A DNA stretch of 64,000 nt. Source: Ranitomeya imitator. Lineage: Eukaryota. Position numbers and translations under genes: made by a program. The stretch is taken from contig NC_091289.1 in assembly GCF_032444005.1 (NCBI RefSeq), positions 4,402,001 through 4,466,000 on the forward strand. Direction: 5' to 3'. The first letter of the stretch is position 1; every line of letters starts with the position of its first letter. Of this stretch, positions 5,036 through 64,000 are shown one piece after another. Under the pieces are notes generated by a model. The model searched no databases and was not told the DNA's origin. It was given only the letters and a program-made list of their open reading frames with translations.

Positions 5036-5269
5036 GGCAGCACGGTGGCTCAGTGGTTAGCACTGTGGCTCAGTGGTTAGCACTGTATGGTGGCTCAGTG
5101 GTTAGCACTGTATGGTGGCTCAGTGGTTAGCACTGTATGGTGGCGCAGTGGTTAGCACAGCAGCCTTGCAGCGCTGGTGTCCTGGGTTCAAATCCCACCA
5201 AGGACAAGATCTGCAAGGAGTCTATATGTTCTCTCCGTGATTCCGTGGGTTTCCTCCCACATTCCAAAG
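5036..5269 (+). mobile_element. tRNA-derived SINE, 5' half (split by a CR1 insertion)
   Basis: Pol III A box TGGCTCAGTGG is present in five tandem copies, followed by B box GGTTCAAATCC and a SINE core ending TTCCTCCCACATTCCAAAG. Confidence 0.8.
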
Positions 5270-6654
5270 TCTAACCTCTATTGTTGGTAAAATATTTGAA
5301 GGGTTTCTGAGGGATGTTATTCTGGATTATCTCAATGAAAATAACTGTTTAACTCCATATCAGCATGGGTTTATGAGAAATCGCTCCTGTCAAACCAATC
5401 TAATCAGTTTTTATGAAGAGGTAAGCTATAGACTGGACCACGGTGAGTCATTGGACGTGGTATATCTCGATTTTTCCAAAGCGTTTGATACCGTGCCGCA
5501 CAAGAGGTTGGTACACAAAATGAGAATGCTTGGTCTGGGGGAAAATGTGTGTAAATGGGTTAGTAACTGGCTTAGTGATAGAAAGCAGAGGGTGGTTATA
5601 AATGGTATAGTCTCTAACTGGGTCGCTGTGACCAGTGGGGTACCGCAGGGGTCAGTATTGGGACCTGTTCTCTTCAACATATTCATTAATGATCTGGTAG
5701 AAGGTTTACACAGTAAAATATCGATATTTGCAGATGATACAAAACTATGTAAAGCAGTTAATACAAGAGAAGATAGTATTCTGCTACAGATGGATCTGGA
5801 TAAGTTGGAAACTTGGGCTGAAAGGTGGCAGATGAGGTTTAACAATGATAAATGTAAGGTTATACACATGGGAAGAGGGAATCAATATCACCATTACACA
5901 CTGAACGGGAAACCACTGGGTAAATCTGACAGGGAGAAGGACTTGGGGATCCTAGTTAATGATAAACTTACCTGGAGCAGCCAGTGCCAGGCAGCAGCTG
6001 CCAAGGCAAACAGGATCATGGGGTGCATTAAAAGAGGTCTGGATACACATGATGAGAGCATTATACTGCCTCTGTACAAATCCCTAGTTAGACCGCACAT
6101 GGAGTACTGTGTCCAGTTTTGGGCACCGGTGCTCAGGAAGGATATAATGGAACTAGAGAGAGTACAAAGGAGGGCAACAAAATTAATAAAGGGGATGGGA
6201 GAACTACAATACCCAGATAGATTAGCGAAATTAGGATTATTTAGTCTAGAAAAAAGACGACTGAGGGGCGATCTAATAACCATGTATAAGTATATAAGGG
6301 GACAATACAAATATCTCGCTGAGGATCTGTTTATACCAAGGAAGGTGACGGGCACAAGGGGGCATTCTTTGCGTCTGGAGGAGAGAAGGTTTTTCCACCA
6401 ACATAGAAGAGGATTCTTTACTGTTAGGGCAGTGAGAATCTGGAATTGCTTGCCTGAGGAGGTGGTGATGGCGAACTCAGTCGAGGGGTTCAAGAGAGGC
6501 CTGGATGTCTTCCTGGAGCAGAACAATATTGTATCATACAATTATTAGGTTCTGTAGAAGGACGTAGATCTGGGGATTTATTATGATGGAATATAGGCTG
6601 AACTGGATGGACAAATGTCTTTTTTCGGCCTTACTAACTATGTTACTATGTTAC
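5270..6654 (+). mobile_element. CR1-clade LINE, 5'-truncated, intact RT/C-terminal ORF2 segment
   Basis: Open frame 5271-6548 with QHGF, YLDFSKAFDTVPH, SGVPQGSVLGPVLF, FADDTK, LERVQRRATK and SLEKRRLRGDLI; 3' tail (ACTATGTT)n. Confidence 0.95.
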
Positions 6655-7529: not shown

Positions 7530-7532
<3 letters not shown>

Positions 7533-7678
7533 GACAGCAGCGATCCGCGCGGAGAGGACACAGGCGCTGAGCTCTGCCGCTTCATTACCGGACAAACCTT
7601 GGATTTTCGGACCCTCGTCCCCGCTCCCGAGGTCTCTGCGGTTGGACACACATGCCTTTCCGCTCTTCCTGGACAGAT

Positions 7679-10600
7679 ATGATTCTTTGTGTGAGAAGGT
7701 AAGAGACGTTCATTATTCCGATAGCGGCGCCCTATTCCGCAGCGCAGAACGTGACGCCTCCGGTTATTCTGCCGCTCCGCTGAAGGACGCCGCACGTCAT
7801 GTGTTTTTCTTCTCCTGCACTAAAGTCCTCTCCACCTGCGTCCGTTTAACGCCTCTTTATTCCAGTCCACAGAGCCTGTTGGCAGAGCAAAGGATTTGTC
7901 GACCTTCGTCTTGTGTGGGGGTCCCAGGCTTTGCAGCCGACCAAGTCATGCACCCCCTGAACCCTCCCGTCTGTCCGGGGCACCCACTGCCTGCACCTGA
8001 AGTGCCCCCACGGGCGCCTGAGCCCCAGCCGCTGCCGCCACCTCCGCAGGACAACAGGGACCCCGAGGAAGATCTTCTCTGCATTGCCAAGACGTTCTGC
8101 TATCTCCGGGAATCTGGTAAGACCCCAAACACCGCAGGAAGCTGAGAAAAACTTATAATCGGGGACTGGGGAGGTTCTCTAGAAGGGTCAATATTCATAA
8201 GAATGGGGGGGTCCCTGAAAGTAACTTTCCTGGCACCGACTTATCGTCCCACCACCCTCATCAGAGACGGCATCGGCTGTGATTGGCGACATCCGGCACC
8301 GGACCGTGGACGCGTTTATCGCACAGTGGCAGAAATAAAAAGGGGGCGCTAACACTTCAGAGCGACAAGTTCAGCAGGGTTGTGAACAACGGGGACGAAT
8401 GTCGGGAGATGGCGGCACTATTTATGTCGTATTAAAAATCAGGAAAAAAAAGCTACAAAGTAAATAATCATCATCACGTCGGCTTTCCTCGCGGTCTCAT
8501 TCATGGGTCACGCCGGCTTTCCTCGCGGTCTCATTCATGGGTCACGTCGGCTTTCCTCGCGGTCTCATTCACGGGTCACGCCGGTTTTCCTCGCGGTCTC
8601 ATTCCCGGTGTCACGCCGGCTTTCCTCGCGGTCTCATTCACGGGTCACGCCGGTTTTCCTCGCGGTCTCATTCCCGGTGTCACGTCGGCTTTCCTCGCAG
8701 TCTCATTCCCGGTGTCACGTCGGCTTTCCTCGCGGTCTCATTCCCGGGTCACGTCGGCTTTCCTCGCGGTCTCATTCATGGGTCACGCCGGTTTTCCTCG
8801 CGGTCTCATTCCCGATGTCACGTCGGCTTTCCTCGCGGTCTCATTCCCGGGTCACGTCGGCTTTTCTCGCGGTCTCATTCCAGGGTCACGCCGGCATTCC
8901 TCGCGGTCTCATTCCCGGTCACGCCGGCTTTCCTCGCAGTCTCATTCCCAGCATCACGTCGGCTTTCCTCGCGGTCTCATTCCCGGGTCACGTCGTATTT
9001 TCTTGCGGTCTCATTCCCGGCATCACGTCGGCTTTCCTCGTGGTCTCATTCCCGGGTCACGTCGGCTTTCCTCGCGGTCTCATTCCCGGGTCACGTCGTA
9101 TTTTCTCGCGGTCTCATTCCCGGCATCATGTCGGCTTTCCTCGCAGTCTCATTCCCGGGTCACGTCGGCTTTTCTCGCGGTCTCATTCCCGGGTCACGTC
9201 GGCTTTTCTCGCGGTCTCATTCCCGGGTCACGCCGGCTTTCCTCGCGGTCTCATTCCCGGGTCACGTCGGCTTTCCTCGCGGTCTCATTCCCAGGTCACG
9301 TCGGCTTTTCTCGCAGTCTCATTCCCGGGTCACGTTGTATTTTCTCGCGGTCTCATTCCCGGCATCACGACGGCTTTCCTCGCGGTCTCATTCCTGGGTC
9401 ACATCGGCTTTCCTCGCGGTCTCATTCCCGGCATCACGACTGCTTTCCTCGCGGTCTCATTCCTGGGTCACATCGGCTTTCCTCGTGATCTCATTCCCGG
9501 GTCACGTCGGCTTTCCTCGCGGTCTCATTCCCGGGTCACGTCGGCTTTTCTCGCGGTCTCATTCCCGGGTCACGTCGGCTTTCCTCGCGGTCTCATTCCC
9601 AGGTCACGTCGGTTTTTCTCGCGGTCTCATTCCCGGGTCACGTCGGCTTTCCTCGCGGACTCATTCACAGGTCACGTCGGTTTTTCTCGCGGTCTCATTC
9701 CCGGGTCACGTTGTATTTTCTCGCGGTCTCATTCCCGGCATCACGTCGGCTTTCCTCGCGGTCTCATTCCTGGGTCACGTCGGCTTTCCTCGTGATCTCA
9801 TTGCCGGCATCACGTCGGCTTTTCTCGCGTTCTCATTCCTGGCGTCACGTCGGCTTTCCTCGCGGTCTCATTCACGGTGTCACGCCGGCTTTCCTCGTGG
9901 TCTCATTCCTGGTTCACGTCGGCTTTCCTCGCGGTCTCATTCCCGGTGTCACGCCGGCTTTCCTCGCGGTCTCATTCCCGGTGTCACGCCGGCTTTCCTC
10001 GCGGTCTCATTCCCGGTGTCACGCCGGCTTTCCTCGCGGTCTCATTCCCGGTGTCACGTCAGCTTTCCTCGCGGTCTCATTCACGGGTCACGCCGGCTTT
10101 CCTCGCGGTCTCATTCACGGGTCACGCTGGCTTTCCTCGCGGTCTCATTCACGGGTCACGTCGGCTTTCCTCGCAGTCTCATTCCCGGTGTCACGCCGGC
10201 TTTCCTCGCGGTCTCATTCCCGGGTCACGTCGGCTTTCCTCGCGGTCTCATTCCCGGTGTCACGTCGGCTTTCCTCGCGGTCTCATTCCCGGTGTCACGA
10301 CGGCTTTCCTCGCGGTCTCATTCCCGGGTCACACCGGCTTTCCTCGCGCTCTCATTCCCGGTGTCACGCCGGCTTTCCTCGCGGTCTCATTCCCGGGTCA
10401 CGTCGGCTTTCCTCGCGGTCTCATTCCCGGGTCACGTCGGCTTTCCTCGCGGTCTCATTCCCGGTGTCACGCCGGCTTTCCTCGCGGTCTCATTCCCGGT
10501 GTCACGCCGGCTTTCCTCGCGGTCTCATTCCCGGTGTCACGCCGGCTTTCCTCGCGGTCTCATTCCCGGTGTCACATCGGCTTTCCTCGCGGTCTCATTC

Positions 10601-11770
10601 ACGGGTCATGCCGGCTTTCCTCGCGGTCTCATTCCCGCAGTGACAGTCGGACGCTCCCACATCTCTTGCCATTCACAGACCCGAGCGGCCACGTTTACAA
10701 AGCTGGAACACGACACCGGTGGGTTTGGACCGGAGGCCGACACTTCCGTGGCGTCAGATGGGACATGGCAGAGAGATCGCTCTGCAAAAAAACTCTGCGT
10801 TTAACCCCCAAAATCCGGGACTTTTTCTTTATTAAATTTTTGCCCGATACATTTTCTGAATCATTTCAGTTTTATAATAATCCAGAGCGTCTTTTTGGTG
10901 CGACCAGAAGAACGTTAGAAAGTTTTCCTGCATTTTTGTGTAAACTGGAGAGATTGTTTTCTAATTCTGGATTCTGCGCACGGTCACGTTCCCTGCTCAG
11001 AGGGTTCCTCGTACCAGACTCGGCCCCGGGACACAGGTCACTCAGCTTTCTGAGAGCCTGGAATGGAGCAGTGAAAATATCACTACAATATGATGAACTG
11101 CCGTTCAGGAGTCTGGGAAAGCTGAGTGACAGCCCCGCAGGACCTGGATAGAACGGCCGTGCTTTAGCCATCTAACATCGGACAAGAGAAGCGGGGAGCA
11201 TCAGGTGCGGGGAGTTGGGTGATGATTTTGCGGTTCCTACAAGTTGTCGCTTTCTCTCCCCTTCCAGGTTGGTATTGGGGGCCGATTACCGCCACAGAGG
11301 CCAAACAGAGACTCCAGAAAATGCCGGAGGGCGTCTTCCTGGTGCGGGACAGCACGCACCCCAGTTACCTCTTCACTTTATCGGTCCGGACGAACCGCGG
11401 CCCCACGAACGTTCGCATCGAGTACTCGGACAGCCTCTTCCGGCTGGACTCTAACTGGCTGTCTAAGCCGCGGATCCTCTCCTTCCCCGACGTCGTCAGC
11501 CTGGTGCAATATTACGTCTCGTCCTGCAACTCCGACAGCTCCAAGGACCCCGCCAGCCGGTCGCCCCCCGCACCCACCTCCCCTAAAGAGCCCCCGGCAG
11601 TGCACCTCAAGCTCCTGCAGCCGCTGCATCGAAGCGCGGACAGCCCGAGCCTCCAGCACCTGTGCCGGCTACAGATCAGCCGCAGCGTGGCGCCGGGCTC
11701 CGACCTCACAGCGCTGCCGCTGCCGCGGAGGATGGTGGACTACCTGCAGCGGTACCCATTCACGCTCTGA
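7679..11770 (+). CDS. CISH: Cytokine-inducible SH2-containing protein; join(7679..7698,7866..8116,11268..11770), 257 aa
   Basis: Exon 1 is MILCVR with AG|GTAAGA donor. Exon 2 ends [20 protein letters not shown]. Exon 3 has the SH2 domain ([52 protein letters not shown]) and a SOCS box ([10 protein letters not shown]...[18 protein letters not shown]). All junctions are GT-AG; 20+251+503=774 nt, in frame. Confidence 0.97.
8474..10637. repeat. CpG-rich minisatellite, 34-35-bp unit, CISH intron 2
   Basis: GTCACGTCGGCTTTCCTCGCGGTCTCATTCCCGG repeated; source of the long spurious ORFs at 8503-11151. Confidence 0.93.
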
Positions 11771-38757: not shown

Positions 38758-39495
38758 CCCTAGTGTCCTGTGTCCTCGGCTGCGAGTGGCTCTTACATTA
38801 GTGACCATTGCCCGACCTAAGAGCTGTTCTGCCAGTGTATTTGATCTGTTCCTCACAAGTGCAGCCCCCCCCCCCCCCCCCCCACCGCTGTTTTTACGCT
38901 CACGGTTATGTATTTTCTCTTGAACTTTTTGTCCAGAACAGTCACTATATATTTTTTCAGATATAAAAATCGTTTCCCACTAAATAATTTGATCAATTTT
39001 CCCTTTTTTCTGCTTTCACATCGGTCCTGCATTGGTGGTAAACACGTTGTTAATGCTCGTTTGGTTCAGCAAAAATCCAGCTAAACCTGCTTTTTTCCTG
39101 CAGCCTTTTTACTGCCAAGAGATCAGGTTTTGGCTGCTGAAAAGAAGGAGCAAAAAAAGCAACGTGTGAACAAAGCCTTATTGTTCAGTCCCCTGTACAG
39201 CTGCAGTCCACATTTTGCTGGTTCCTGTCGGCTCTGCTCGCTGCTCCCAGCTGCTGGCTCGGTGCATTGGGCGGATCTGATGCATTTGTAGTGTCTGTTG
39301 GTACAGTGCAGCGACAGAATAATGAATGCAGCTCTGGATGTGACTGCAGCCACGATGTAGCTCAGGATCAGTCGCAGGTAAAGCACAGTGGACATACTCT
39401 ATTTAAGTGTAATAACCTACTCTGTATTTTCTCCTGCAGGTTTCCTGTGGACTGTGTGACTATGCTTCCTGACCCACGGTGACGACCAAACTACC

Positions 39496-50467
<10,972 letters not shown>

Positions 50468-50749
50468 GGAAGGGTCCTGACTCGTCTGTTGGGGGTCAGT
50501 GTCTTCGTGACTCACTGTCCTGTCTTTTAGCATCGTGCCCTGGAGGGGAAGATGTCATCCTCTTACCACCCTAGGCCAGGAATTTGGGGACCGGTGGTTG
50601 GCTCCGTGCTCTGCAGCTCCGCATCATAATCTGCAGACCTACAGCAACTGTAGGACTAACGTGACAAATAATCCTGCACAACCCACATACTGTACATGCT
50701 GTATCTGAGAGTCACTGCAGAGCGCTACGCCCGTAGAGGGAACTACCGC

Positions 50750-53700
50750 ACACAGTGTGATATCCTCCACTCTGAGCGCTCCTCCTCCCATAGTGATATC
50801 CTCCGCTCTGAGCGCTCCTCCTCCCATAGTGATATCCTCCACGTTCAGAGCGCTCCTCCCATAGTGATATCCTCCACGCTCAGAGCGCTCCTCCTCCCAT
50901 AGTGATATCCTCCACGCTCAGAGCGCTCCTCCTCCCATAGTGATATCCTCCACGCTCAGAGCGCTCCTCCTCCCATAGTGATATCCTCCACGCTCAGAGC
51001 GCTCCTCCTCCCATAGTGATATCCTCCACGCTCAGAGCGCTCCTCCTCCCATAGTGATATCCTCCACGCTCAGAGCGCTCCTCCTCCCATAGTGATATCC
51101 TCCACGCTCAGAGCGCTCCTCCTCCCATAGTGATATCCTCCACGCTCAGAGCGCTCCTCCTCCCATAGTGATATCCTCCTCCTCCCATAGTGATATCCTC
51201 CACGTTCAGAGCGCTCCTCCTCCCATAGTGATATCCTCCTCCTCCCATAGTGATATCCTCCTCCTCCCATAGTGATATCCTCCTCCTCCCATAGTGATAT
51301 CCTCCACGCTCAGAGCGCTCCTCCTCCCATAGTGATATCCTCCACGCTCAGAGCGCTCCTCCTCCCATAGTGATATCCTCCACGCTCAGAGCGCTCCTCC
51401 TCCCATAGTGATATCCTCCACGCTCAGAGCGCTCCTCCTCCCATAGTGATATCCTCCTCCTCCCATAGTGATATCCTCCACGCTCAGAGCGCTCCTCCTC
51501 CCATAGTGATATCCTCCACTCTGAGCGCTCCTCCTCCCATAGTGATATCCTCCACGCTCAGAGCGCTCCTCCTCCCATAGTGATATCCTCCACGCTCAGA
51601 GCGCTCCTCCTCCCATAGTGATATCCTCCACTCCCAGAGCGCTCCTCCTCCCATAGTGATATCCTCCACTCTGAGCGCTCCTCCTCCCATAGTGATATCC
51701 TCCACTCACAGAGCGCTCCTGCTCCCGTAGTGATATCCTCCACGCTCAGAGCGCTCCTCCTCCCGTAGTGATATCCTTCACGCTCAGAGCGCTCCTCCTC
51801 CCATAGTGATATCCTCCACGTTCAGAGCGCTCCTCCTCCCATAGTGATATCCTCCACTCCCAGAGCGCTCCTCCTCCCATAGTGATATCCTCCACTCCCA
51901 GAGCGCTCCTCCTCCCATAGTGATATCCTCCACTCCCAGAGCGCTCCTCTGTTGTGAATTCTGTGGTCGAGCTCCCTCCTGTGGTCACAAGTGGTACTTC
52001 GGCTGATTCTGTCTATGGGCTTCCGTTGGTGGATGTGAGTGGTACTGCGGCTTCTGAGTTTCCTTCCTCAGGTGATGAGGTTAAGTCGTTAGGTGCTGCT
52101 CTATTTAACTCCACCTAGTGCTTTGATCCTGGCCTCCAGTCAATGTTCCAGTATTGGTCTTGCTTCCTCCTGGATCGTTCTTGTGGCCTGTCTGCCCTGC
52201 ATAAGCTAAGTTCTGCTTGTGTTACTTTTGTTTGCTATATTTTCTGTCCAGCTTGCTATATTGGTTTTTCTTGCTTGCTGGAAGCTCTGAGACGCAGAGG
52301 GAGCACCTCCGTACCGTTAGTCGGTGCGGAGGGTCTTTTTGCCTCTCTGCGTGGTTGTTTGTAGGTTTTTGTGTTGACCGCAAAGCTATCTTTCCTATCC
52401 TCGGTCTATTCAGTAAGTCGGGCCTCACTTTGCTAAATCTATTTCATCTCTGTGTTTGTATTTTCATCTTACTCACAGTCATTATATGTGGGGGGCTGCC
52501 TTTTCCTTTGGGGAATTTCTCTGAGGCAAGGTAGGCTTATTTTTCTATCTTCAGGGCTAGCTAGTTTCTCAGGCTGTGCCGAGTTGCATAGGGAGCGTTA
52601 AGCGCAATCCACGGCTGCCTCTAGTGTGGTGTGATAGGATTAGGGATTGCGGTCAGCAGAGTTCCCACGTCTCAGAGCTCGTCATATGTTTTTTGGTTAT
52701 TGTCAGGTCACTTTGTGTGCTCTGAACTTCAAGGTCCATTGTGGTTCTGAATTACCTATTCATAACACTCCTCCTCCCATAGTGATATCCTTCACGCTCA
52801 GAGCGCTCCTCCTCCCATAGTGATATCCTCCATGCTCAGAGCGCTCCTCCTCCCATAGTGATATCCTCCACGCTCAGAGCGCTCCTCCTCCCATAGTGAT
52901 ATCCTCCACGCTCAGAGCGCTCCTCCTCCCATAGTGATATCCTCCATGCTCAGAGCGCTCCTCCTCCCATAGTGATATCCTCCACGCTCAGAGCGGTCCT
53001 CCTCCCATAGTGATATCCTCCACGCTCAGAGCGCTCCTCCTCCCATAGTGATATCCTTCACGCTCAGAGCGCTCCTCCTCCCATAGTGATATCCTCCACG
53101 CTCAGAGCGCTCCTCCTCCCATAGTGATATCCTCCACGCTCAGAGCGCTCCTCCTCCCATAGTGATATCCTCCACGCTCAGAGCGCTCCTCCTCCCATAG
53201 TGATATCCTCCACGCTCAGAGCGCTCCTCCTCCCATAGTGATATCCTCCACGCTCAGAGCGCTCCTCCTCCCATAGTGATATCCTCCACGCTCAGAGCGC
53301 TCCTCCTCCCATAGTGATATCCTCCACGCTCAGAGCGCTCCTCCTCCCATAGTGATATCCTCCACGCTCAGAGCGCTCCTCCTCCCATAGTGATATCCTC
53401 CACGCTCAGAGCGCTCCTCCTCCCATAGTGATATCCTCCACGCTCAGAGCGCTCCTCCTCCCATAGAGTGATATCCTCCTCCTCCCATAGTGATATCCTC
53501 CACGTTCAGAGCGCTCCTCCTCCCATAGTGATATCCTCCACGCTCAGAGCGCTCCTCCTCCCATAGTGATATCCTCCACGCTCAGAGCGCTCCTCCTCCC
53601 ATAGTGATATCCTCCACGCTCAGAGCGCTCCTCCTCCCATAGTGATATCCTCCACGCTCAGAGCGCTCCTCCTCCCATAGTGATATCCTCCACGCTCAGA

Positions 53701-55515
53701 GCGCTCCTCCCATAGTGATATCCTCCACGCTCAGAGCGCTCCTCCTCCCATAGTGATATCCTCCACGCTCAGAGCGCTCCTCCTCCCATAGTGATATCCT
53801 CCTCCTCCCATAGTGATATCCTCCTCCTCCCATAGTGATATCCTCCTCCTCCCATAGCGATATCCTCCACGCTCAGAGCGCTCCTCCTCCCATAGTGATA
53901 TCCTCCACGCTGAGAGCGCTCCTCCTCCCATAGTGATATCCTCCACGCTCAGAGCGCTCCTCCTCCCATAGTGATATCCTCCACGCTCAGAGCGCTCCTC
54001 CTCCCATAGAGTGATATCCTCCTCCTCCCATAGTGATATCCTCCTCCTCCCATAGTGATATCCTCCACGTTCAGAGCGCTCCTCCTCCCATAGTGATATC
54101 CTCCACGCTCAGAGCGCTCCTCCTCCCATAGTGATATCCTCCACGCTCAGAGCGCTCCTCCTCCCATAGTGATATCCTCCACGCTCAGAGCGCTCCTCCC
54201 ATAGTGATATCCTCCACGCTCAGAGCGCTCCTCCTCCCATAGTGATATCCTCCACGCTCAGAGCGCTCCTCCTCCCATAGTGATATCCTCCACGCTCAGA
54301 GCGCTCCTCCCATAGTGATATCCTCCACGCTCAGAGCGCTCCTCCTCCCATAGTGATATCCTCCACGCTCAGAGCGCTCCTCCTCCCATAGTGATATCCT
54401 CCTCCTCCCATAGTGATATCCTCCTCCTCCCATAGCGATATCCTCCACGCTCAGAGCGCTCCTCCTCCCATAGTGATATCCTCCACGCTCAGAGCGCTCC
54501 TCCTCCCATAGTGATATCCTCCACGCTCAGAGCGCTCCTCCTCCCATAGTGATATCCTCCACGCTCAGAGCGCTCCTCCCATAGTGATATCCTCCACGCT
54601 CAGAGCGCTCCTCCTCCCATAGAGTGATATCCTCCTCCTCCCATAGTGATATCCTCCTCCTCCCATAGTGATATCCTCCACGTTCAGAGCGCTCCTCCTC
54701 CCATAGTGATATCCTCCACGTTCAGAGCGCTCCTCCTCCCATAGTGATATCCTCCACGCTCAGAGCGCTCCTCCTCCCATAGTGATATCCTCCACGCTCA
54801 GAGCGCTCCTCCTCCCATAGTGATATCCTCCACGCTCAGAGCGCTCCTCCTCCCATAGTGATATCCTCCACGCTCAGAGCGCTCCTCCTCCCATAGTGAT
54901 ATCCTCCACGCTCAGAGCGCTCCTCCTCCCATAGAGTGATATCCTCCTCCTCCCATAGTGATATCCTCCACGCTCAGAGCGCTCCTCCTCCCATAGTGAT
55001 ATCCTCCACGCTCAGAGCGCTCCTCCTCCCATAGTGATATCCTCCACGCTCAGAGCGCTCCTCCTCCCATAGAGTGATATCCTCCTCCTCCCATAGAGTG
55101 ATATCCTTCGCTCAGAGCGCTCCTCCTCCCATAGTGATATCCTCCTCCTCCCATAGCGATATCCTCCACGCTCAGAGCGCTCCTCCTCCCATAGTGATAT
55201 CCTCCTCCTTCCATAGAGTGATATCCTTCGCTCAGAGCGCTCCTCCTCCCATAGTGATATCCTCCTCCTCCCATAGCGATATCCTCCACGCTCAGAGCGC
55301 TCCTCCTCCCATAGTGATATCCTCCACGCTCAGAGCGCTCCTCCTCCCATAGTGATATCCTCCTCCTCCCATAGTGATATCCTCCTCCTTCCATAGTGAT
55401 ATCCTCCTCCTTCCATAGAGTGATATCCTTCGCTCAGAGCGCTCCTCCTCCCATAGTGATGTCCTCCTCCTCCCATAGTGATATCCTCCTCCTCCCATAG
55501 TGATATGCTCCACGC
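50750..55515. repeat. Minisatellite, 38-bp unit (interrupted by the solo LTR)
   Basis: CTCCCATAGTGATATCCTCCACGCTCAGAGCGCTCCTC repeated on both sides of 51950-52767. Confidence 0.93.
51950..52767. mobile_element. Solo LTR inserted in the 38-bp satellite
   Basis: An 818-bp unique block with TGTTGTGAAT...ATTCATAACA termini (TG...CA, inverted ends) and an apparent CTCCTC target duplication; no coding sequence. Confidence 0.8.
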
Positions 55516-56479
55516 TGTGACCCACGGCTTTCCTCTCACAGACGGGTTGGGGGTCACACGTTCCCTGTGTCTCCTTGTGCTTTCTGGTGATTTTTGCCCC
55601 TCGGGCCCTGACTATATCTCTATATATTGCTGGCCACAGTGTGTCTGTGAGACCCCCACTGTGCTGGCACCAGGCAGGACCCTCTCCTGTGCATATGCCT
55701 TAATATCACTACCATGCACCTCGCTCTCAGGCCGCAGACCCTCACCCTCCGTTCTGCAGCACAGCACTGCTGGAGTATCCGTTGCTTTGTGTCAGTCCAG
55801 CCTCTCACTTTTGGAGACGGCTAAGCGTTTTAACCCCTTGGTTGCTGTTAGACTGACACCACAGCCAGGCGGCTAGGCCATTCCTCCGCCTCGGATTCGC
55901 TGCAGCGCCATTTTGTACTGTTCCTATTTGATATTTATTTGTTTGAATCTTTCGTGCTTCATTAATAAATTCTTCAGACCCCGAGGACGGTAACGGGTGA
56001 ATGCTCCGCGTTCCTGTGCGTCGGACACCCCCGGGGCTGCCCAGAAGGAAGGAGCCCTCGCTATTCACACAGGAGGACAGCGTCCATCATGGCTTTTCGG
56101 GGGTCGGAATAATAAAAAAATATTTTCCCGGCTGTGTAATCCGCGGCGGGGGCCGTGCGCTGGGGTTGGTTGCAATGTAATCTTCTGTAGCCACGGATTA
56201 AAGAGATTAATGGTGAAATAAGCAGATTCCAGATTCTCTGTTCAGTCTGGACCGCAGCTGTCAGTCCGGGGCACATCGACCCCCAAAATAATCCCAATCC
56301 AGAGCTGGATGCTGCACTCCTGTCTCCCAGAGGAGCGGTCGCTTCACTAGTATCTGGTCAATACATGTTATCTGCACTGATACATTGTAACAAAGGCCGT
56401 ATGTTCAGCTCCTCCATTGTGCTACATTCTAGCAAACCCTTTACTGACCAGATCGGAGCATATGCTCAGCCCCAACATA

Positions 56480-58028
56480 CACTGCTCAAAAAAATAAAGG
56501 GAACACTACAATCCCACATCCTAGATATCGCTGGATGAAATATTCCAGTTGTAAATCTTTATTCATTACATAGTGGAATGTGTTGAGAATAATAAAACCT
56601 AAAAATGATCAATGTAAATCACAACTAATATCTCACGGAGGTCTGGATTTGGAATGATGCTCAAAATCAAAGTGGAAAATGAAGTTACAGGCTGATACAA
56701 CTTCAGTGGAAATGTCTCAAGACAAGGGAATGATGCTCAGTAGTGTGTGTGGCCTCCACGTACCTGTATGACCTCCCTACAATGCTTGGGCATGCTCCTG
56801 ATGAGGCGGCGGATGGTCTCCGGAGGGATCTCCTCCCAGACCTGGACTAAAGCATCCGCCAACTCCTGGACAGTCTGTGGTGCAATGTGACATTGGTGGA
56901 TGGTGCGAGACATGATGTCCCAGATGTGGTCAATCGGATTCAGGTCTGGGGAACGGGCGGCCAGTCCATAGCTTCAATGCCTTCATCTTGCAGGAACTGC
57001 TGACACTCCAGCCACATGAGGTCTGGCATTGTCCTGCATTAGGAGGAGCCCAGGGCCACCGCACCACATGTGGTCTCACAAGGGGTCTGAGGATCTCATC
57101 TCTGTACCTAATGGCGGTCAGGCTATCTCTGGCGAGCACATGGAGGGCTAAGCGGCCCTCTAAAGAAATGCCACCCCACACCATTACTGACCCACTGCCA
57201 AACCGGTCATGCTGAAGGATGTTGCAGGCAGCAGATCGCTCTCCACGGCGTCTCCAGACTCTGTCACATGTGCTCAGTGTGAACCTGCTCTCATCTGTGA
57301 AGAGCACAGGGTGCCAGTGGCAAATTTGCCAATCCTGGTGTTCTGTGGCAAATGCCAAGCATCCTGCATGGTGTTGGGCTGTGAGCACAACCCCCATCTG
57401 TGGACGTCGGGCCCTCAGACCATCCTCATGGAGTCGGTTTCTAACCGTTTGTGCAGACACATGCACATTTGTGGCCTGCTGGAGGTCATTTTGCTGGACT
57501 CTGGCAGTGCTCCTCCTTGCACATAGGCTGAGGTAACAGTCCTGCAGCTGGGTTGTTGCCCTCCTACGGCTTCCTCCACGTCTTCTGGTGTACTGGCCTG
57601 TCTCCTGGTAGCGCCTCCAGCCTCTGGACACTACGCTGACAGACACAGCAAACCTTCTTGCCACAGCTCGCATTGATGTGCCATCCTGGATGAGCTGCAC
57701 TACCTGAGCCACTTGTGTGGGTTAGAGTCCGTCTCATGCTACCACGAGTGTGAAAGCACAACCAACATTCAAAAGTGACCAAAACATCAGCCATAAAGCA
57801 TTGGTACTGAGATGTGGTCTGTGGTCCCCACCTGCAGAACCGATCCTTTATTGAGGGGGTCTTGATAATTGCCAATAATTTCCATCTGTTGTCTATTCCA
57901 TTTGCACAACAGCATGTGACATTGTCAATCAGTGTTGTTCCTAAGTGGACAGTTTGATTTCACAGACGTTTGATTTACTTGGAGTTAGATTTTGTTGTTT
58001 AAGTGTTCCCTTTATTTTTTGTGCAGTG
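56480..58028 (-). mobile_element. Tc1/mariner DNA transposon, degenerate transposase
   Basis: TIRs CACTGCTCAAAAAAATAAAGGGAACACT / AGTGTTCCCTTTATTTTTTGTGCAGTG with TA TSD. Minus strand has the HTH region ([15 protein letters not shown]), FTDESRF, VMVWGGI and NARPH; the 3' part is frameshifted. Confidence 0.93.
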
Positions 58029-58814
58029 TATAAATGTCCCCATTCACTGACAGCTCATGAGTCCCAGAGACGGAAGCAGCGCCGCTAGTCAGTCCGGGGA
58101 ACAGAGGGAGGGGGCAGGTTTGGTGTCCAGTTCTTCCATCTTGTACTTTTTCTGGGGGTCCATTAGACTCTGCCCCAGCAGGATGCAGACAAGAATCAGA
58201 ACCCCGACACTGAAGGCATCTGTCAGTCACTCTGCCCTGCTGTGTGCAGACGAGGGGCCACGTGTGCCAGGGCTCATAGGGGCACTACAGGGGTCGCAGC
58301 TTATTTGCATCTCTCCTGCTGCGAATTCTCAATTCCCCTGACACCAGCCACCCCTTCCCTTCACAAGCCTGGTTGTGCTGGGACTTGTCCTACTACTTCC
58401 CTGACATGACAGACCAGCCCTAGATCTGATGTGGAATGTGACCTTTCATCTCGGAAGGGAGGGGTTGTAGTCCTGACAAGGCAGACGCTGAGCTGCCAGG
58501 AGAAGCTGCCAACACTTAGGAAGAAGAGACGCATACCCCCCCAGAGGAGCAGGGCTACCAAATGGCAAGTATGTCCATGCGGAGCGAGGAGTGTGCAGTA
58601 TGAGGAGCGCGGAGGGGGCAGCACACGGATGGCGGAGGGGACAGTGATGTGCTGCAGGTTCTTTCACTTCCTCGTCAGTCGCCATATTACCAGGTCAGAC
58701 TACAGGAGCCGTGACTGCGTGATCTGCCGCCAGTCATCACTGCTAGAAGTCAGCATGAGATGTTTCCAATTACATAAGAACTTCTGCTCCTTATTTACTG
58801 AAGCCGCTAAACCG

Positions 58815-59610
58815 TTCCTCTTCTTTTTGTTGTGTCTGCACGGCGCCGCTCTTCCGTTCCTCATCTTTCTGTCATGTCTGCACGGCGCCGCTCTTCCGTT
58901 CCTCTTCTTCCGTTCCTATTCTTCCGTTCCTATCTGCACTGTGCCGCTCTTCCGTTCCTCTTCTTTCTGTCGTATCTGCACTGTGCTGCTCTTCTGTTCC
59001 TCATCTTTCTGTCGTGTCTGCACGGCGCCGCTCTTTCGTTCCTCATCTTTCTGTCATGTCTGCACGGCGCCACTCTTCCGTTCCCCATCTTTGTCATGTC
59101 TGCATGGTGCCGCTCTTCGGTTCCTCATTTTTCTGTCGTGTCTGCATGGCGCCGCTGGTCCATTCCACTTCTTTCGGCCTTATCTGCACGGCGCCGCTCT
59201 TCTGTTCCTCTTCGTTCTGTCGTGTCTGCGTGGTGCCGCTGTTCTGTTCCTCTAATTTCGGTTGTGTCTGCGTGGCGCCGCTGTTCCATTCCTCTTCTTT
59301 CTGTCGTGTCTGCATGGTGCCGCTCTTCCGTTCCGCATCTTTCGGTAGTTTTTGCACGGCTTGCTGTTCCGTTCCTCTTCTTTCGGTCGTGTCTGCACGG
59401 CTTGCTGTTCCGTTCCTCTTCTTTCGGTTGTGTCTGCACGGTGCCGCTATTCCATTCCTCTTTCTGTCGTGTCTGCATGGCGCCGCTGTTCCATTCCTCT
59501 TTCGGTTGTGTCTGCACGGCGCCGCTCTTCCGTTCCGCATCTTTCGGTAGCTTTTGCACGGCGCCGCTCCTCCGGTCCTTTTCTTTGGGTCGTGTCTGCA
59601 CAGCACCGGC
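58815..59610. repeat. Diverged minisatellite, ~38-40-bp unit
   Basis: TTCCGTTCCTCTTCTTTCTGTCGTGTCTGCACGGCGCCGCTC-like units. Confidence 0.85.
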
Positions 59611-59690
59611 CACCAGATATTTAGGTTTCTGAAAGGAGGAGGGTCTGTGAACTTGTTAGAAAATGGCACAGAATTTCAGTAATGGATATA

Positions 59691-60453
59691 CACTGCCCAA
59701 AACAAAGGGAACACTACAATCCCACATATCACTGGATGAAATATTCCAGTTACAAATCTTTATTCATTACATAGTGGAATGCGCTGGGAACAATAAAACA
59801 GAAAAATGATCTATGCAAATCAGAATTAGTATCCCATGGAGCTTTGCCTGTGGAATGATTGACATTGGTGGATGGTGCGAGACATGATGTCCCAGATGTG
59901 CTCCATCGGATTCAGGTCTGGGGAACGGGCGGCCAGTCCATAGCTTCAATGCCTTCATCTTGCAGGAACTGCTGACACACTCCAGCCACATGAGGTCTGG
60001 CATTGTCCTGCATTAGGAGGAGCCCAGGGCCAACCGCACCAGCATATGGTCTCACAAAGGGTCTGAGGATGTCATCTCGGTACCTAATGGCAGTCAGGCT
60101 ACCTCTGGCGAGCACATGGAGGGCTGAACTGCCTGAGAAACTTCTGTGGGTTGTAGTCACCGCTTCATGATACTGTACAGTACCTCTAGGGGTGAGAGCA
60201 ATGACAAAATGCAAAAGTGACCAAAACAGCCAAAAAGTATGAGAGCAGAGAAATGGTCTGTGATCTCCCCTGCAGAACCGCTCCTTTTATAGGGGGTGTC
60301 TTGCTAATTGCCGATCAGTTGTCTGCTCCATTTGCAGCAGGAGAAATTGATTCCCAATCGATTTCTTCATAACTGGACCTGGTGATTGCACAGAAGTGTG
60401 ATGGACGTGGAGTTTCATTGTGTTGTGTGTTTCCTTTATGGTTTTGAGCAGTG
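59691..60453 (-). mobile_element. Internally deleted copy of the same Tc1 family
   Basis: Related TIRs and TA flanks; retains LARGSLTAIRYRDDILRPFVRPYAGAVGPGLLLMQDNARPHVAGVCQQFL but lacks the N-terminal half. Confidence 0.88.
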
Positions 60454-61158
60454 TATTAGCGAACGCACTTCCATTTTGGTAACCAGCTACGATGTGGCCC
60501 TCCCTAACGCTCTCCGTGTTTATAGTTGTGCGGCGTTCGTCCCAGTTACGGGCCGGGCTGTGTCTCCTGGTCACTATATCAACCTGAGACTCTGTGTCAC
60601 ATCAACGTTGGATTGTGAATTTATTTTTCACGATTTCTGTGCAGAATTCCTCAGCGTGAGGATAAGATTTGTAAAATGTCGTCTGTGCCCACCGCAGAAT
60701 CCACCCGCGCATATCCACATCGCGAGCCTTCGAGCAGTTCTGTCCGGTGTGGATTTCCTCTAAGGCTTTGTTCACACATTTTCTCCAGTTTTTATCTTCC
60801 GTTGTGAATTATCGTACATTACAAGCTCCACATGCTGAGGAAAGTTTCCACACAGAAATCCGAAAGTGCTGCAGATTGTCAGATCGCGGCTCGTCGTGTT
60901 GTGCGCGTGCCGCAGAATGATCAGTGCAGGTTTCACCATCTGTTTATAGGGGGCACATGGGTGGTCTGCTGGGAGTCGCTGTGGATATGGCTCCAATATT
61001 ACAGGTCTGTGGCTAATAAGCCCTTTCTCTTCTTTTTGCTTACAGTCGAGGCTCGGTACGTTGTGAAGATTTCCTCTGATGTTGACGTCCATTGTGCATT
61101 TTGGGGACTCCTCAAATCCTAATTAACACCGTGGTGACCCCTCGTTCTGCGGATCACC

Positions 61159-62280
61159 ATGCTGGAGCCGTATCCCAGCTCTGACATAGATGAGCCGCAC
61201 ACATTACGTTCTGATCTGCCGATCAATGGGATTGTGCTGCCGGAGTCACCAGATCCGAGTCCTCCATCTTGTGCATCTTATTCATTGCAGATCAGTGATT
61301 CACACAGTGCAGAACTCGTAACGGGGGCACACAAGAGCCAATGCGAGGCGAACTGTGGCCTCAAAAGAGACCCTTCACCCTGCGGCTCCAGCCCTTCAGA
61401 TGCGTGTGAGCTTTCATGTGCTGCCAATCCGACAGCAGCGGCATCAAAGACGTTCAGTGAGACGAAGAGCGCAACAGAGGAGCTGGAACATGAACGCAAA
61501 GCACGAGCAGAAGACATCAGAGACTTCCTCCGCCCTGCTGCATTAGGCCATACCCGGGGCAGCCATGGTGGCACAGTGTCTCCAGGACCTCCAGCTGGCT
61601 TCTCGGTGTCTGATTTACCCCCCTCGGTGTCTGATTTACCCCCCTCGGTGTCTGATTTATCCTCTTTCCCTCCATATTTGCTGCCGTCTTCCGTGAAGTT
61701 TTTCAGCTTTGTGATACTCCACGTCCCGGAGGATGAGGAGGAAGCTCAGAGGGTCTGCGCAGTTCTGCACCATCTGCAGATCGTGAACGGCACAACGTTT
61801 TGTGAAGGTTTTGAGACCGCAGGACAAAGTCCTCTCCGATGCCTTGAAGACGCCGTGGAGAACTCTGCCTACGTCGTTCTTCTACTCACTGACAATTTTG
61901 TGTCCAGATGGGGCGAGTTCCAGACCAACGTTGTCCTTATGAACTCAATCCAAGACCAAAAGAAGGGCGGCACGGTCATTCCTCTTATTCCCAGGTTCAA
62001 CCCTGCAAAAAGGACCATGCCCCTGCCTCTGAGAGCATTAACGCGCCTGGAGGAGAAGTCTGCGCTCTTCAAGACCAAAGTTCAGATAACATTCAAAGAA
62101 GACGAGATCAAAATGCAACGAGAAGAATGGGAAAGAGAACAGGCAAAACGATGGTCCGAAAAACAGCTGGAAGATGCAACGCGGCTGTCACGTGCTCTGG
62201 CGGAGATACGGCGTAACGAGGAGCAGCTGCGCACCGTCAACTCTCGTCTTTGTCAACAGTTATCGCTACACCCGACCTAA
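61159..62280 (+). CDS. TICAM (TRIF/TRAM)-family TIR-domain adaptor, single coding exon, 373 aa
   Basis: Uninterrupted ORF with Kozak CACCATG, an in-frame upstream stop at 61120-61122 and a splice acceptor at 61045/61046. The TIR domain (~aa181-312) FSFVILHVPEDEEEAQRV...GTTFCEGFETAG...LEDAVENSAYVVLLLTDNF...LMNSI...VIP aligns by eye to human TICAM1 FYNFVILHARADEHIALRV...GATFCEDFQVPG...LQDAIDHSAFIILLLTSNF and to TICAM2. Orthology is uncertain, so no symbol is given. Confidence 0.9.
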   Translation: MLEPYPSSDIDEPHTLRSDLPINGIVLPESPDPSPPSCASYSLQISDSHSAELVTGAHKSQCEANCGLKRDPSPCGSSPSDACELSCAANPTAAASKTFSETKSATEELEHERKARAEDIRDFLRPAALGHTRGSHGGTVSPGPPAGFSVSDLPPSVSDLPPSVSDLSSFPPYLLPSSVKFFSFVILHVPEDEEEAQRVCAVLHHLQIVNGTTFCEGFETAGQSPLRCLEDAVENSAYVVLLLTDNFVSRWGEFQTNVVLMNSIQDQKKGGTVIPLIPRFNPAKRTMPLPLRALTRLEEKSALFKTKVQITFKEDEIKMQREEWEREQAKRWSEKQLEDATRLSRALAEIRRNEEQLRTVNSRLCQQLSLHPT

Positions 62281-62369
62281 TATTACCAGGACAACGATCC
62301 ATCGATGAGATCCACGCTGCGAGAAATATACAGATAGGAAACCAAAATTGTATGAATGTGCAGCACCCA

Positions 62370-63745
62370 GCATAGGTGCCCCTGAAAGAGACAGAGGATA
62401 CTTGTGCCCCCGAAAGAAGAGACAGGATAGCTGTGCCCCCTTGCGAAGAGACATGATAGGTGTGCCTCCAAAAGAAGAAGCAGAGGATAGCTGTGCCCCC
62501 CCCGAGAGAAGAGACAGGATAGCTGTGCCCCCCGAGAGAAGAGACAGAGGATAGCTGTGCCCCCCGAGAGAAGAGACAGGATAGCTGTGCCCCCCGAGAG
62601 AAGACAGAGGATAGCTGTGCCCCCCGAGAGAAGAGACAGAGGATAGCTGTGCCCCCCGAGAGAAGAGACAGGATAGCTGTGCCCCCCGAGAGAAGAGAGA
62701 GAGGATAGCTGTGCCCCCCGAGAGAAGAGAGAGAGGATAGCTGTGCCCCCCGAGAGAAGAGAGAGAGGATAGCTGTGCCCCCCGAGAGAAGAGAGAGAGG
62801 ATAGCTGTGCCCCCCGAGAGAAGAGAGAGAGGATAGCTGTGCCCCCCGAGAGAAGAGAGGATAGCTGTGCCCCCGAGAGAAGAGAGAGAGGATAGCTGTG
62901 CCCTCCAAGAAAAGAGAGAGAGGATAGCTGTGCCCTCCGAGAAAGACAGAGGGTAGCTGTGCCCCTGAGAGAAGAGGCAGAGGATTGCTGTACCACCAAG
63001 AGAAGATGCAGAGGATAGCTGTACCCCCAATCCTCCCCCCCCCCCCCCCGAGAGAAGAGGCAGAGGATAGCTGTGGCCCCTAAGAGAAGAGGCTGAGGAT
63101 AGCTGTGTGTTTCCCCCCCCACCCCCACCCCGAGACAAGGGGCAGAGGATTGCTGTGCTCCCCGAGAGAAGAGGCAGAGGATTGCTGTACCCCCAAGAGA
63201 AGATGCAGAGGATAGCTGTACCCCCCCTCCTCCCCCCCCCCCCCCCCGAGAGAAGAGGCAGAGGATAGCTGTGCCCCCCAAAAGAAGAAATAGAGGATAG
63301 CTGTGCCCCACGAGAGACAAGGCAGCGGATAGCTTTGCCCCCAAGAGAAGAGGCAGAGGATAGCTGTCGCCCCGAGAAAAAAGACAGAGGATAGCTGAGC
63401 CCCCGAGAGAAGAGGCAGAGGATAGCTGTGCCCCCTAGCGAAGAGACATGATGGGTGTGCCTGCAAGAGAAAAAGCAGAGGATAGCTATGCCCCCTGAGA
63501 GAAGAGACAGGATAGCTGTGCCCTCCGAGAAAAGAGGCAGAGGGTAGCTGTGCCCCAGAGAGAAGAGGCAGAGGATAGCTGTGCCCTCAACCCCCCACCC
63601 CCCGAGAGAAGAGACAGGATAGCTGTGTTCCCTAGCGAAGAGACATGATAGGTGTACCTCCAAAAGAAGAAGCAGAGAATAGCTATGCCCCCCAAGAAAA
63701 GAGACAGAGGGTAGCTGTGCCCCAGAGAGAAGAGGCGGAGGATAG

Positions 63746-63776
<31 letters not shown>

Positions 63777-64000
63777 GAGAGAAGAGACAGGATAGCAGTG
63801 GCCCCCGAGCGAAGAGGCAGAGGATAGCTGTGGCCCCCGAGAGAAGAGACAGAGGATAGCTGTGCCCCCCCAAGAGAAGAGACAGGATAGCTGTGGCTCC
63901 CGAGGGAAGAGGCAGAGGATAGCTGTGGCTCCCGAGAGGAGAGGCAGAGGATAGCTGTGCCCCCCCAAGAGAAGAGACAGGATAGCTGTGGCCCCCAAGA
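62370..64000. repeat. Purine-rich minisatellite, ~30-32-bp unit, 3' of the TICAM-like gene
   Basis: GAGAAGAGACAG(A)GGATAGCTGTGCCCCCC repeated to the window end. Confidence 0.9.

Follow-up and report, generated by a model that had tools for sequence, protein, structure and literature searches.

A single-exon open reading frame (ORF) of 373 codons at 61159-62280 on the plus strand of a 64,000-nucleotide stretch of Ranitomeya imitator contig NC_091289.1 (the window) is a young in-paralogue of anuran TICAM1, the gene for TRIF. The best explanation of the data, and one we consider probable, is that this transcribed copy on C3orf18 encodes a putative TRIF lacking the RHIM. As a lineage-specific duplicate of a known gene family the locus is of moderate interest; new here are its splicing onto C3orf18 after the stop codon of that gene, a frameshift in the Ranitomeya RHIM, its fast evolution with conserved TIR positions spared, and the finding that its missing N-terminal domain and BB-loop alanine are traits of frogs or hyloids more widely. 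No paper was found in the literature on this duplicate or on any link between C3orf18 and TICAM1.

An earlier note on this DNA read the gene order as CISH(+), HEMK1(-), C3orf18(+) and then a TICAM-like gene, and exon and domain matches in the window bear this out. With the window ending at 64000, CACNA2D2, which continues this block in human, does not come into view. Features around C3orf18 and the TICAM1-like exon are as follows.

7531-8142 (+), CISH upstream exon
11168-11767 (+), CISH SH2 domain and SOCS box, from a domain search
between 28544 and 34182 (-), HEMK1, four exon-like ORFs
56740-57721 (-), Tc1/mariner transposase remnant (HTH_Tnp_Tc3_2 at 5.6e-14)
59770-60286 (-), second Tc1 transposase fragment, DDE region, whose translation resembles the first copy

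Two of the four HEMK1 ORFs weakly match HemK/PrmC structures in a PDB search, a third has a weak Pfam PrmC_N match, and an NPPY motif is visible. Matches of a HEMK1 exon to designed armadillo proteins in the PDB were rejected as spurious, as they fall on translated intron. Many repeat-derived contigs overlie the second Tc1 fragment. C3orf18 itself gave no Pfam match in any of its exons, and its identity rests on homologue search: tblastn of the annotated 133-aa R. imitator protein on the window recovers it from four coding exons spanning 39496-50467.

39440-39672 (+), C3orf18 start-codon exon with a 56-nt 5'UTR and the ATG at 39496 (tblastn, AG/GT boundaries)
42342-42367 (+), C3orf18 26-nt coding exon (tblastn, transcript of another frog, splice boundaries)
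43492-43609 (+), C3orf18 coding exon (tblastn), also joined straight to 61046 in annotated isoform X3
50387-50494 (+), last C3orf18 coding exon, stop TGA at 50465-50467 (tblastn, RNA contig match)
50495-61045 (+), GT-AG intron spliced out when the TICAM1-like exon is used (RNA contigs, boundaries)
55600-56120 (+), conventional C3orf18 3'UTR terminal exon, limits approximate (similarity to another frog's transcript)
61046-62523 (+), TICAM1-like exon, an alternative 3' terminal exon of C3orf18 (RNA contigs), its 3' side entering a minisatellite

Exon 39440-39672 aligns with the C3orf18 transcript of another frog, and the conventional terminal exon, which carries AATAAA near 55,965 and 56,110, matches the 3'UTR of such a transcript at 69% identity across 351 nt. 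The intron within the C3orf18 3'UTR is ancestral, and its donor at 50494 (GT at 50495-50496) serves both 3' fates of the gene. When the TICAM1-like exon is chosen, about 5 kb past the normal poly(A) exon, the intron removed is 10.5 kb long and contains the conventional 3'UTR exon, minisatellites and both Tc1 remnants.

RNA-like contigs from four runs in four studies cover 61045-62392 and extend about 80 to 135 nt beyond, with no coverage of 60271-61014 among the same contigs. They begin exactly at 61046, so that the start proposed in the earlier note proves to be a true splice acceptor. Their loose ends map to 50464-50493 with no mismatches, which places the junction at 50494|61046, 27 nt past the C3orf18 stop codon. 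The parts of contigs upstream of the junction measure 490 and 504 nt, and the exons from 39440 to the donor sum to 485 nt; these sizes point to a complete C3orf18 coding sequence upstream on the same transcript. The annotation holds a second route to the same acceptor: RefSeq isoform X3 of R. imitator (113 aa) ends in QPQGK followed by SRLGTL, the latter being a reading of 61046-61063, and joins the third C3orf18 exon directly to 61046.

On the spliced mRNA the TICAM1-like ATG lies 140 nt after the C3orf18 stop, and an in-frame stop at 61135-61137 precedes it, so no C3orf18 fusion protein results. Because splicing takes place after the C3orf18 stop, the copy is an alternative 3' terminal exon and a second cistron rather than a fusion partner, and the mRNA is bicistronic-like, with two complete, nonoverlapping ORFs on one spliced transcript. 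Among the contigs, none showed a separate transcript start for the TICAM1-like ORF. The C3orf18 start lies in a good context (ACCATGA), and a second cistron that follows such a 133-codon ORF is normally translated inefficiently. In Ranitomeya variabilis, RefSeq labels the paralogue protein "C3orf18 homolog isoform X1," a name that is an annotation error. The existing RefSeq entry, the splicing onto C3orf18 and the RHIM frameshift had all been missed by the earlier note.

Assignment of the ORF to the TICAM family, first made from its translation, was upheld by domain and structure searches. Pfam TIR_2 scored 29.1 bits, above its cut-off of 28, and a phmmer search of solved structures in the PDB ranked TRIF first (3.6e-30, residues 153-338) and TRAM next (2e-22); residues 368-557 of human TRIF align with the TIR of the paralogue.

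61282-61296 (+), pLxIS-type motif S-L-Q-I-S, residues 42-46 (alignment)
61602-61659 (+), in-frame 21-nt (7-aa) tandem repeat, 2.8 copies
61690-62148 (+), TIR domain, residues about 178-330 (Pfam, PDB, alignment)
62274-62375 (+), out-of-frame RHIM remnant, I-Q-I-G core at 62328-62339

The protein retains an N-terminal motif with the pLxIS, where S-L-Q-I-S is aligned to the conserved P-L-Q-I-S of frog TICAM1, together with the core of the TIR and a long helix at the C-terminal end. The 7-aa repeat lies in the linker and is strongly expanded in the paralogue of Phyllobates. An AlphaFold2 model built on a 17-row alignment was poor (mean pLDDT, 43.8), and only helix 314-369 was confident. No TRAF6 motifs were recognized in the paralogue, and the TRIF N-terminal domain (PF17798) gave no Pfam match; that domain was also absent from six of six canonical frog TICAM1 proteins scanned, while echidna and arowana TRIF matched it. 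In the TIR, an alanine replaces the BB-loop proline. Neither trait is peculiar to the paralogue: lack of the N-terminal domain is general among frogs, and the BB-loop alanine among hyloids.

By asking where the copy falls in a phylogeny with TICAM1 and TICAM2, a check that the earlier note had proposed, we found that it groups with TICAM1, inside the hyloid-frog genes, with support of 99/98, 100/99 and 92/97 in three trees, the last with human TICAM2 as an outgroup row. TICAM2 formed a separate clade, the TICAM1/TICAM2 split being supported at 100/100, and the four paralogues known from proteome searches (two Ranitomeya species, Phyllobates terribilis and Anomaloglossus, all dendrobatoids) formed a 100/100 clade of their own. 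These trees contradict the suggestion of an ancient paralogue lost in amniotes. A third TICAM lineage retained in amphibians would account for a locus unrelated to that of TICAM1 or TICAM2, but it is very improbable given the strongly supported nesting, the hyloid BB-loop alanine, frog N-terminal motif and RHIM-coding DNA that the paralogue has in common with its relatives, and the absence of a copy from every non-dendrobatoid proteome searched. Searches of 5.8 billion proteins and of 1.84 billion representatives placed no other cluster between the four paralogues and canonical frog TICAM1. The idea of a third TICAM stands numerically (TICAM1, TICAM2 and the paralogue) and fails only as a claim of an ancient lineage.

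Chromosomal placement agrees with a relocated, lineage-specific duplicate, as the earlier note had inferred. In all four species the paralogue and C3orf18 share one contig (206.08, 222.42, 399.05 and 263.40 Mb), and canonical TICAM1 lies on other contigs of 0.98 to 1.25 Gb; the R. imitator canonical protein is 426 aa long and encoded on a 1.25-Gb contig, so the copy in the window is not the only TICAM1 of this species. TICAM1 and C3orf18 occupy separate contigs in 11 other frogs. An odd location is all that could suggest a sole TICAM1 orthologue that merely moved, or an artefact of assembly or annotation, and either is extremely unlikely: besides the canonical gene on another contig, RNA contigs from four studies equal the window base for base, frameshift included, and the same arrangement recurs in the assemblies of four species. 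Whether amphibians have TICAM2 was a point of conflict between two reviews, one reporting absence (PMC6043800) and the other presence (PMC9440496). It is present: annotated TICAM2 genes occur in R. variabilis, Phyllobates, Dendrobates and Anomaloglossus, and in R. variabilis, Phyllobates and Anomaloglossus it lies on the chromosome of canonical TICAM1.

We propose that an interchromosomal duplication occurred on the stem lineage of dendrobatoids or at a slightly earlier point in hyloid history, probably by retroposition of a parent with a single coding exon, and that the relocated copy then captured the C3orf18 splice donor and, with it, expression. A strictly dendrobatoid origin was not favored by AU tests that joined the paralogue and the dendrobatoid canonical copies as one clade, although the result was borderline (p=0.049 when distant outgroups were included, 0.098 when they were not). 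Among the traits of a retrocopy, placement on a new chromosome was confirmed, and intron loss is uninformative because the parental coding sequence also occupies one exon. The 3' flank of the paralogue is overwritten by minisatellite from 62389, and its 3'UTR similarity to a canonical TICAM1 transcript (from Logan, beginning inside the coding sequence) is at shuffle level.

In Ranitomeya the RHIM has dropped out of the reading frame. In R. imitator its remnant reads I-Q-I-G-N-Q-N in a frame other than that of the ORF and keeps 84% nucleotide identity to the RHIM of a canonical hyloid TICAM1, and the ORF stop at 62278-62280 arose by a 1-nt deletion common to the two Ranitomeya species. RNA contigs are colinear with the window across the frameshift, with no indel. 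Canonical frog copies and the Phyllobates paralogue still read the RHIM in frame, and the Anomaloglossus paralogue model, as in Ranitomeya, stops early.

For the same pair of Ranitomeya species, 42 of 373 residues differ between paralogues versus 15 of 422 between canonical TICAM1 proteins, and the path in TIR-rich columns is 0.113 versus 0.025. The paralogue evolves 3 to 4.5 times faster than canonical TICAM1, with conserved TIR positions still spared. Differences between the two Ranitomeya copies fall in 3 of 66 conserved TIR columns versus 15 of 85 others (p=0.02), and those from the Phyllobates copy in 6 of 66 versus 25 of 85 (p=0.002). dN/dS in the TIR is 0.27 against one canonical hyloid gene. 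One possibility, which we hold to be tentative, is that a once-functional gene has become an expressed relic in Ranitomeya, a decaying copy that rides untranslated in one of the alternative C3orf18 3'UTRs and whose ORF is a leftover. Removal of the RHIM by frameshift, the accelerated protein change, within-species differences of four nonsynonymous to one synonymous, and a place as second cistron for which no separate promoter was seen would all fit such decay; in addition, a neutral simulation gave each lineage a 33% chance of remaining free of stops, so the lack of stops alone is weak evidence for function. Against it, recent substitutions keep off conserved TIR columns, both Ranitomeya ORFs have 373 codons and align without a gap or indel in spite of their residue differences, the pLxIS and all 46 family-invariant columns common to the canonical copies are retained in the alignment, and the copy persists in both dendrobatoid families.

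If the paralogue is indeed translated as a TRIF without RHIM, its protein would join TLR3/TICAM1 TIR assemblies, where recruitment of IRF3 is predicted to be possible via a phosphorylated pLxIS and coupling to RIPK1/RIPK3 impossible. The paralogue would then serve as a TRIF with interferon output only, or as a modulating form of it, and its fast evolution would mean relaxed or diversifying selection. A stronger form of this proposal, which we regard as unlikely, is a truly bicistronic vertebrate C3orf18 mRNA in dendrobatoids, in which reinitiation or internal entry lets ribosomes make, from the second cistron, a TRIF without RHIM that uncouples interferon induction from RIPK-dependent NF-kB activation and cell death under pathogen-driven diversifying selection. 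To our knowledge, no TLR adaptor but TRIF connects sensing by the receptor with all three of IRF3, NF-kB and RIPK-driven cell death. Natural variants of one duplicate, with the RHIM kept in Phyllobates and lost in Ranitomeya, therefore offer a ready comparison of which outputs require which module in a nonmammalian vertebrate.

Compared with its parent, the paralogue has much in common with canonical anuran TICAM1 (R. imitator XP_069623890.1, Bufo bufo and Rana dybowskii TRIF): a single coding exon, the D-E-P-H-T-L-R-S-D-L and L-Q-I-S N-terminal motifs, the BB-loop alanine found in all hyloids examined, and the post-TIR helical segment. It differs in being only 42 to 47% identical to these proteins on a long stem branch (0.46 to 0.72), in its linker tandem repeat, and in being transcribed from C3orf18, whereas the canonical gene is its own transcription unit. 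With mammalian TRIF it has the pLxIS logic in common (PMC9440496). That protein has 712 aa, in contrast to the 373 aa of the Ranitomeya paralogue with no in-frame RHIM. TICAM2 (TRAM) is likewise a TICAM-family TIR adaptor that is short and has no RHIM; it measures about 200 to 235 aa, bears an N-terminal myristoylation signal and lacks a pLxIS region. The paralogue, at its greater length, begins M-L-E-P and falls outside the TICAM2 clade.

As a route to expression, the locus is a dated, well-bounded case of a dispersed duplicate that gains expression through the pre-existing 3'UTR-intron donor of a neighbor. It resembles TRIM5-CypA, reportedly a retrocopy captured through the splice sites of its host gene, and CERS1-GDF1, said to be expressed from a bicistronic mRNA, in that an intronless copy is expressed via an upstream host transcript and promoter. 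Unlike in those systems, translation of the second ORF is putative here, the splice falls after the host stop codon, and an in-frame stop before the ATG leaves the two proteins unfused.

The plus strand carries a TICAM1-like open reading frame (ORF) of 373 codons at 61159-62280. Its product scores above the Pfam TIR_2 threshold and, among solved structures, matches human TRIF best (3.6e-30, residues 153-338), followed by TRAM (2e-22). The earlier note had begun this gene at 61046, which proves to be a genuine splice acceptor, a polypyrimidine tract then AG, 113 nt 5' of the ATG. The neighbors it listed, CISH(+), HEMK1(-), and C3orf18(+), are borne out.

11168-11767, plus strand: CISH, with SH2 plus SOCS box
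28.5-34.2 kb, minus strand: HEMK1, four exon-like ORFs with an NPPY motif, two weak HemK/PrmC structure matches and, for a third, weak Pfam PrmC_N
39496-39672, 42342-42367, 43492-43609, and 50387-50464, plus strand: C3orf18 coding exons, stop codon 50465-50467 (tblastn with the annotated 133-aa R. imitator C3orf18)
50495-61045, plus strand: intron, GT-AG

Tandem repeat makes up 34 of the 64 kb, in 22 blocks, and these arrays account for many of the long 'ORFs' seen when the window is translated. A 31-32-nt minisatellite fills the rest of the window from 62389 onward, and the TICAM1-like exon extends its 3'UTR into it; a LINE-type reverse-transcriptase ORF of 435 aa that looks intact lies upstream of CISH at 5241-6545(+).

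A protein encoded on a 206,080,291-bp contig, which also bears R. imitator C3orf18, matches the ORF at 100% identity; a Ranitomeya variabilis protein listed in RefSeq as 'C3orf18 homolog isoform X1' matches it at 89%. A protein family search grouped R. imitator and R. variabilis paralogues with proteins of Phyllobates terribilis (62%) and Anomaloglossus baeobatrachus (58%). Canonical TICAM1, at 42-45% identity to the TICAM1-like protein, formed a second group in R. imitator, R. variabilis, Dendrobates tinctorius, P. terribilis, and Anomaloglossus, and non-dendrobatoid frogs had a single TICAM1 each; no other cluster fell between the two groups among 1.84 billion cluster representatives scanned. 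R. imitator thus does possess the separate ticam1 that the earlier note had proposed looking for. TICAM2 is annotated throughout amphibians, four dendrobatoids among them, which fits one report (PMC9440496) and contradicts an older review (PMC6043800). The TICAM family of these frogs thus has three members, canonical TICAM1, the paralogue, and TICAM2, and the suspected third TICAM is one by number. For D. tinctorius C3orf18 the annotation lists isoforms X2 and X3 (P0152 and P0153), implying an X1 that may be a copy of the TICAM1-like ORF; protein searches found no X1 protein of this gene.

Location was compared contig by contig, with contig size as chromosome label rather than base-level synteny. 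The paralogue and C3orf18 share a contig in all four dendrobatoids (206.08, 222.42, 399.05, and 263.40 Mb), canonical TICAM1 of the same four lies on a contig of 0.98-1.25 Gb, and TICAM1 and C3orf18 occupy separate contigs in 11 non-dendrobatoid frogs. It is therefore the copy linked to C3orf18 that is derived and has moved, in line with the lineage-specific duplicate first suspected. Canonical TICAM1 and TICAM2 share a chromosome-sized contig in most frogs (Pseudophryne, Leptodactylus, Hyperolius, Dendropsophus, Aquarana, Mantella, Bombina, and Xenopus laevis, as well as the dendrobatoids R. variabilis, Phyllobates, and Anomaloglossus) and lie on different contigs in Engystomops, Eleutherodactylus, and Pyxicephalus. 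As amphibian TRIF has been described without its usual neighbors (PMC9440496), this possible linkage is of interest.

In a tree with TICAM2 as outgroup, the TICAM1/TICAM2 split received 100/100 support, and the four paralogues formed one clade (100/100). Its stem is long (0.46-0.72), and in three data sets the clade branches from within hyloid-frog TICAM1 (99/98, 100/99, and 92/97). This nesting excludes the ancient third TICAM lineage offered as an alternative origin. Forcing the paralogue beside the dendrobatoid canonical clade cost 8-15 log-likelihood units (AU p = 0.049 and 0.098). The phylogeny called for in the earlier note thus sets the gene within hyloid TICAM1 and apart from TICAM2, and puts the duplication somewhere between the hyloid and the dendrobatoid ancestors, which is young on the vertebrate scale.

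Assembled contigs of four sequencing runs from four studies span 61045-62392, mismatch-free in three of the four. All four runs' contigs continue 5' into letters that are not adjacent to 61046 in the genome, and 60271-61014 is uncovered by the contigs of every run, so that they behave as cDNA. The upstream letters place uniquely at 50464-50493, with the donor at 50494, 27 nt past the C3orf18 stop codon. In L001, a C3orf18 transcript of another frog, this donor opens an ancestral 3'UTR intron whose usual partner is a 3'UTR exon, here at ~55.6-56.0 kb with AATAAA nearby. Given this junction and partner, the TICAM1-like exon is an alternative last exon of C3orf18, 5 kb beyond the usual 3'UTR exon. 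Contigs of two runs extend 490 and 504 nt 5' of the junction, and since 485 nt separate 39440, where the start-codon exon begins, from the donor, they most likely hold the whole C3orf18 coding sequence. Contigs of the remaining two runs end 29 nt into the C3orf18 exon, which we infer is an assembly-graph branch between two 3' fates. RefSeq backs the model independently: C3orf18 isoform X3 of R. imitator (113 aa) takes its last six residues from 61046-61063, so exon 3 is there joined directly to the 61046 acceptor. Very many contigs of all four runs match a Tc1 remnant at 59800-60180 (95-99% identity); this Tc1 family is therefore abundant in the four RNA-like data sets.

Because of the C3orf18 stop and an in-frame stop at 61135-61137 upstream of the TICAM1-like ATG, there is no C3orf18-TICAM1 fusion protein. 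The ORF forms a second cistron: it begins 140 nt past the end of the first, with one 15-codon uORF in between, and its start context is good (ACCATGC). The 3'UTR intron conserved in frog C3orf18 lies so close to the stop (50465-50494, L001) that, under the usual 50-55-nt rule, it would not trigger nonsense-mediated decay. We found no paper on the duplicate in the searched library, and RefSeq lists the paralogue proteins as 'C3orf18 homolog isoform X1' or 'uncharacterized protein'; although public, the sequences have gone unrecognized, and the splicing of this exon onto C3orf18 transcripts is a new observation. Identity, origin, and transcript are the parts of the picture that we hold with high confidence.

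Between the R. imitator and R. variabilis ORFs there are 42 residue differences and not one gap or stop, and the differences avoid TIR columns conserved in canonical TICAM1 (3/66 versus 15/85; p = 0.02), as do those between Phyllobates and Ranitomeya (6/66 conserved versus 25/85 other TIR columns; p = 0.002). Together with retention in both dendrobatoid families, this counts against an expressed but decaying relic, a reading we consider rather unlikely, even though the paralogue evolves 3-4.5 times faster than canonical TICAM1 (15/422 residues in the same species pair), one run of the same species carries four nonsynonymous and one synonymous differences in the ORF, and the second-cistron place is unfavorable for translation. 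Absence of stops is weak evidence of function, since simulated neutrality leaves a 33% chance per lineage of remaining stop-free. We lean slightly toward a working protein in Ranitomeya at present.

Aligned with canonical frog TICAM1 (alignment A1), the paralogue shares the N-terminal D-E-P-H-T-L-R-S-D-L block, the L-Q-I-S (pLxIS) motif, 46 invariant columns, nearly all in the TIR, and a helix after the TIR, the one segment that AlphaFold, in an otherwise poor model, predicted with confidence. The TRIF N-terminal domain, carried by echidna and arowana TRIF, was absent from all six canonical frog TICAM1 proteins scanned with Pfam, and these begin directly with the pLxIS-bearing segment; BB-loop Ala replaces Pro in all hyloid TICAM1, with Pro kept in myobatrachid, ranoid, and Bombina proteins. 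Neither feature is specific to the paralogue. Its own are a 21-nt in-frame repeat (2.8 copies in R. imitator, many more in Phyllobates) and a few fixed changes adjoining pLxIS and in the TIR. The RHIM (I-Q-I-G-N-Q-N) ends the canonical copies and the Phyllobates paralogue, whereas both Ranitomeya ORFs end in Q-L-S-L-H-P-T without it in frame. Its coding sequence continues out of frame, which fits a 1-nt deletion in an Asn codon, and still has 84% nucleotide identity to a distant canonical gene; the frameshift is real, as the RNA contigs have no indel there. If made, the protein would join TLR3 and canonical TICAM1 in TIR assemblies, where it could offer IRF3 to TBK1; in Ranitomeya it could not recruit RIPK1/RIPK3, and it would then be an interferon-biased or modulating adaptor. 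That a TICAM1 duplicate captured as a C3orf18 3' exon plays this role is, as a whole, a picture we find reasonably probable. The gene itself is a lineage-specific TICAM1 duplicate and alternative 3' exon of C3orf18 that keeps pLxIS and TIR and, in Ranitomeya, has no RHIM. It belongs to a known family, is expressed by an unusual route, and does not amount to a new kind of system.
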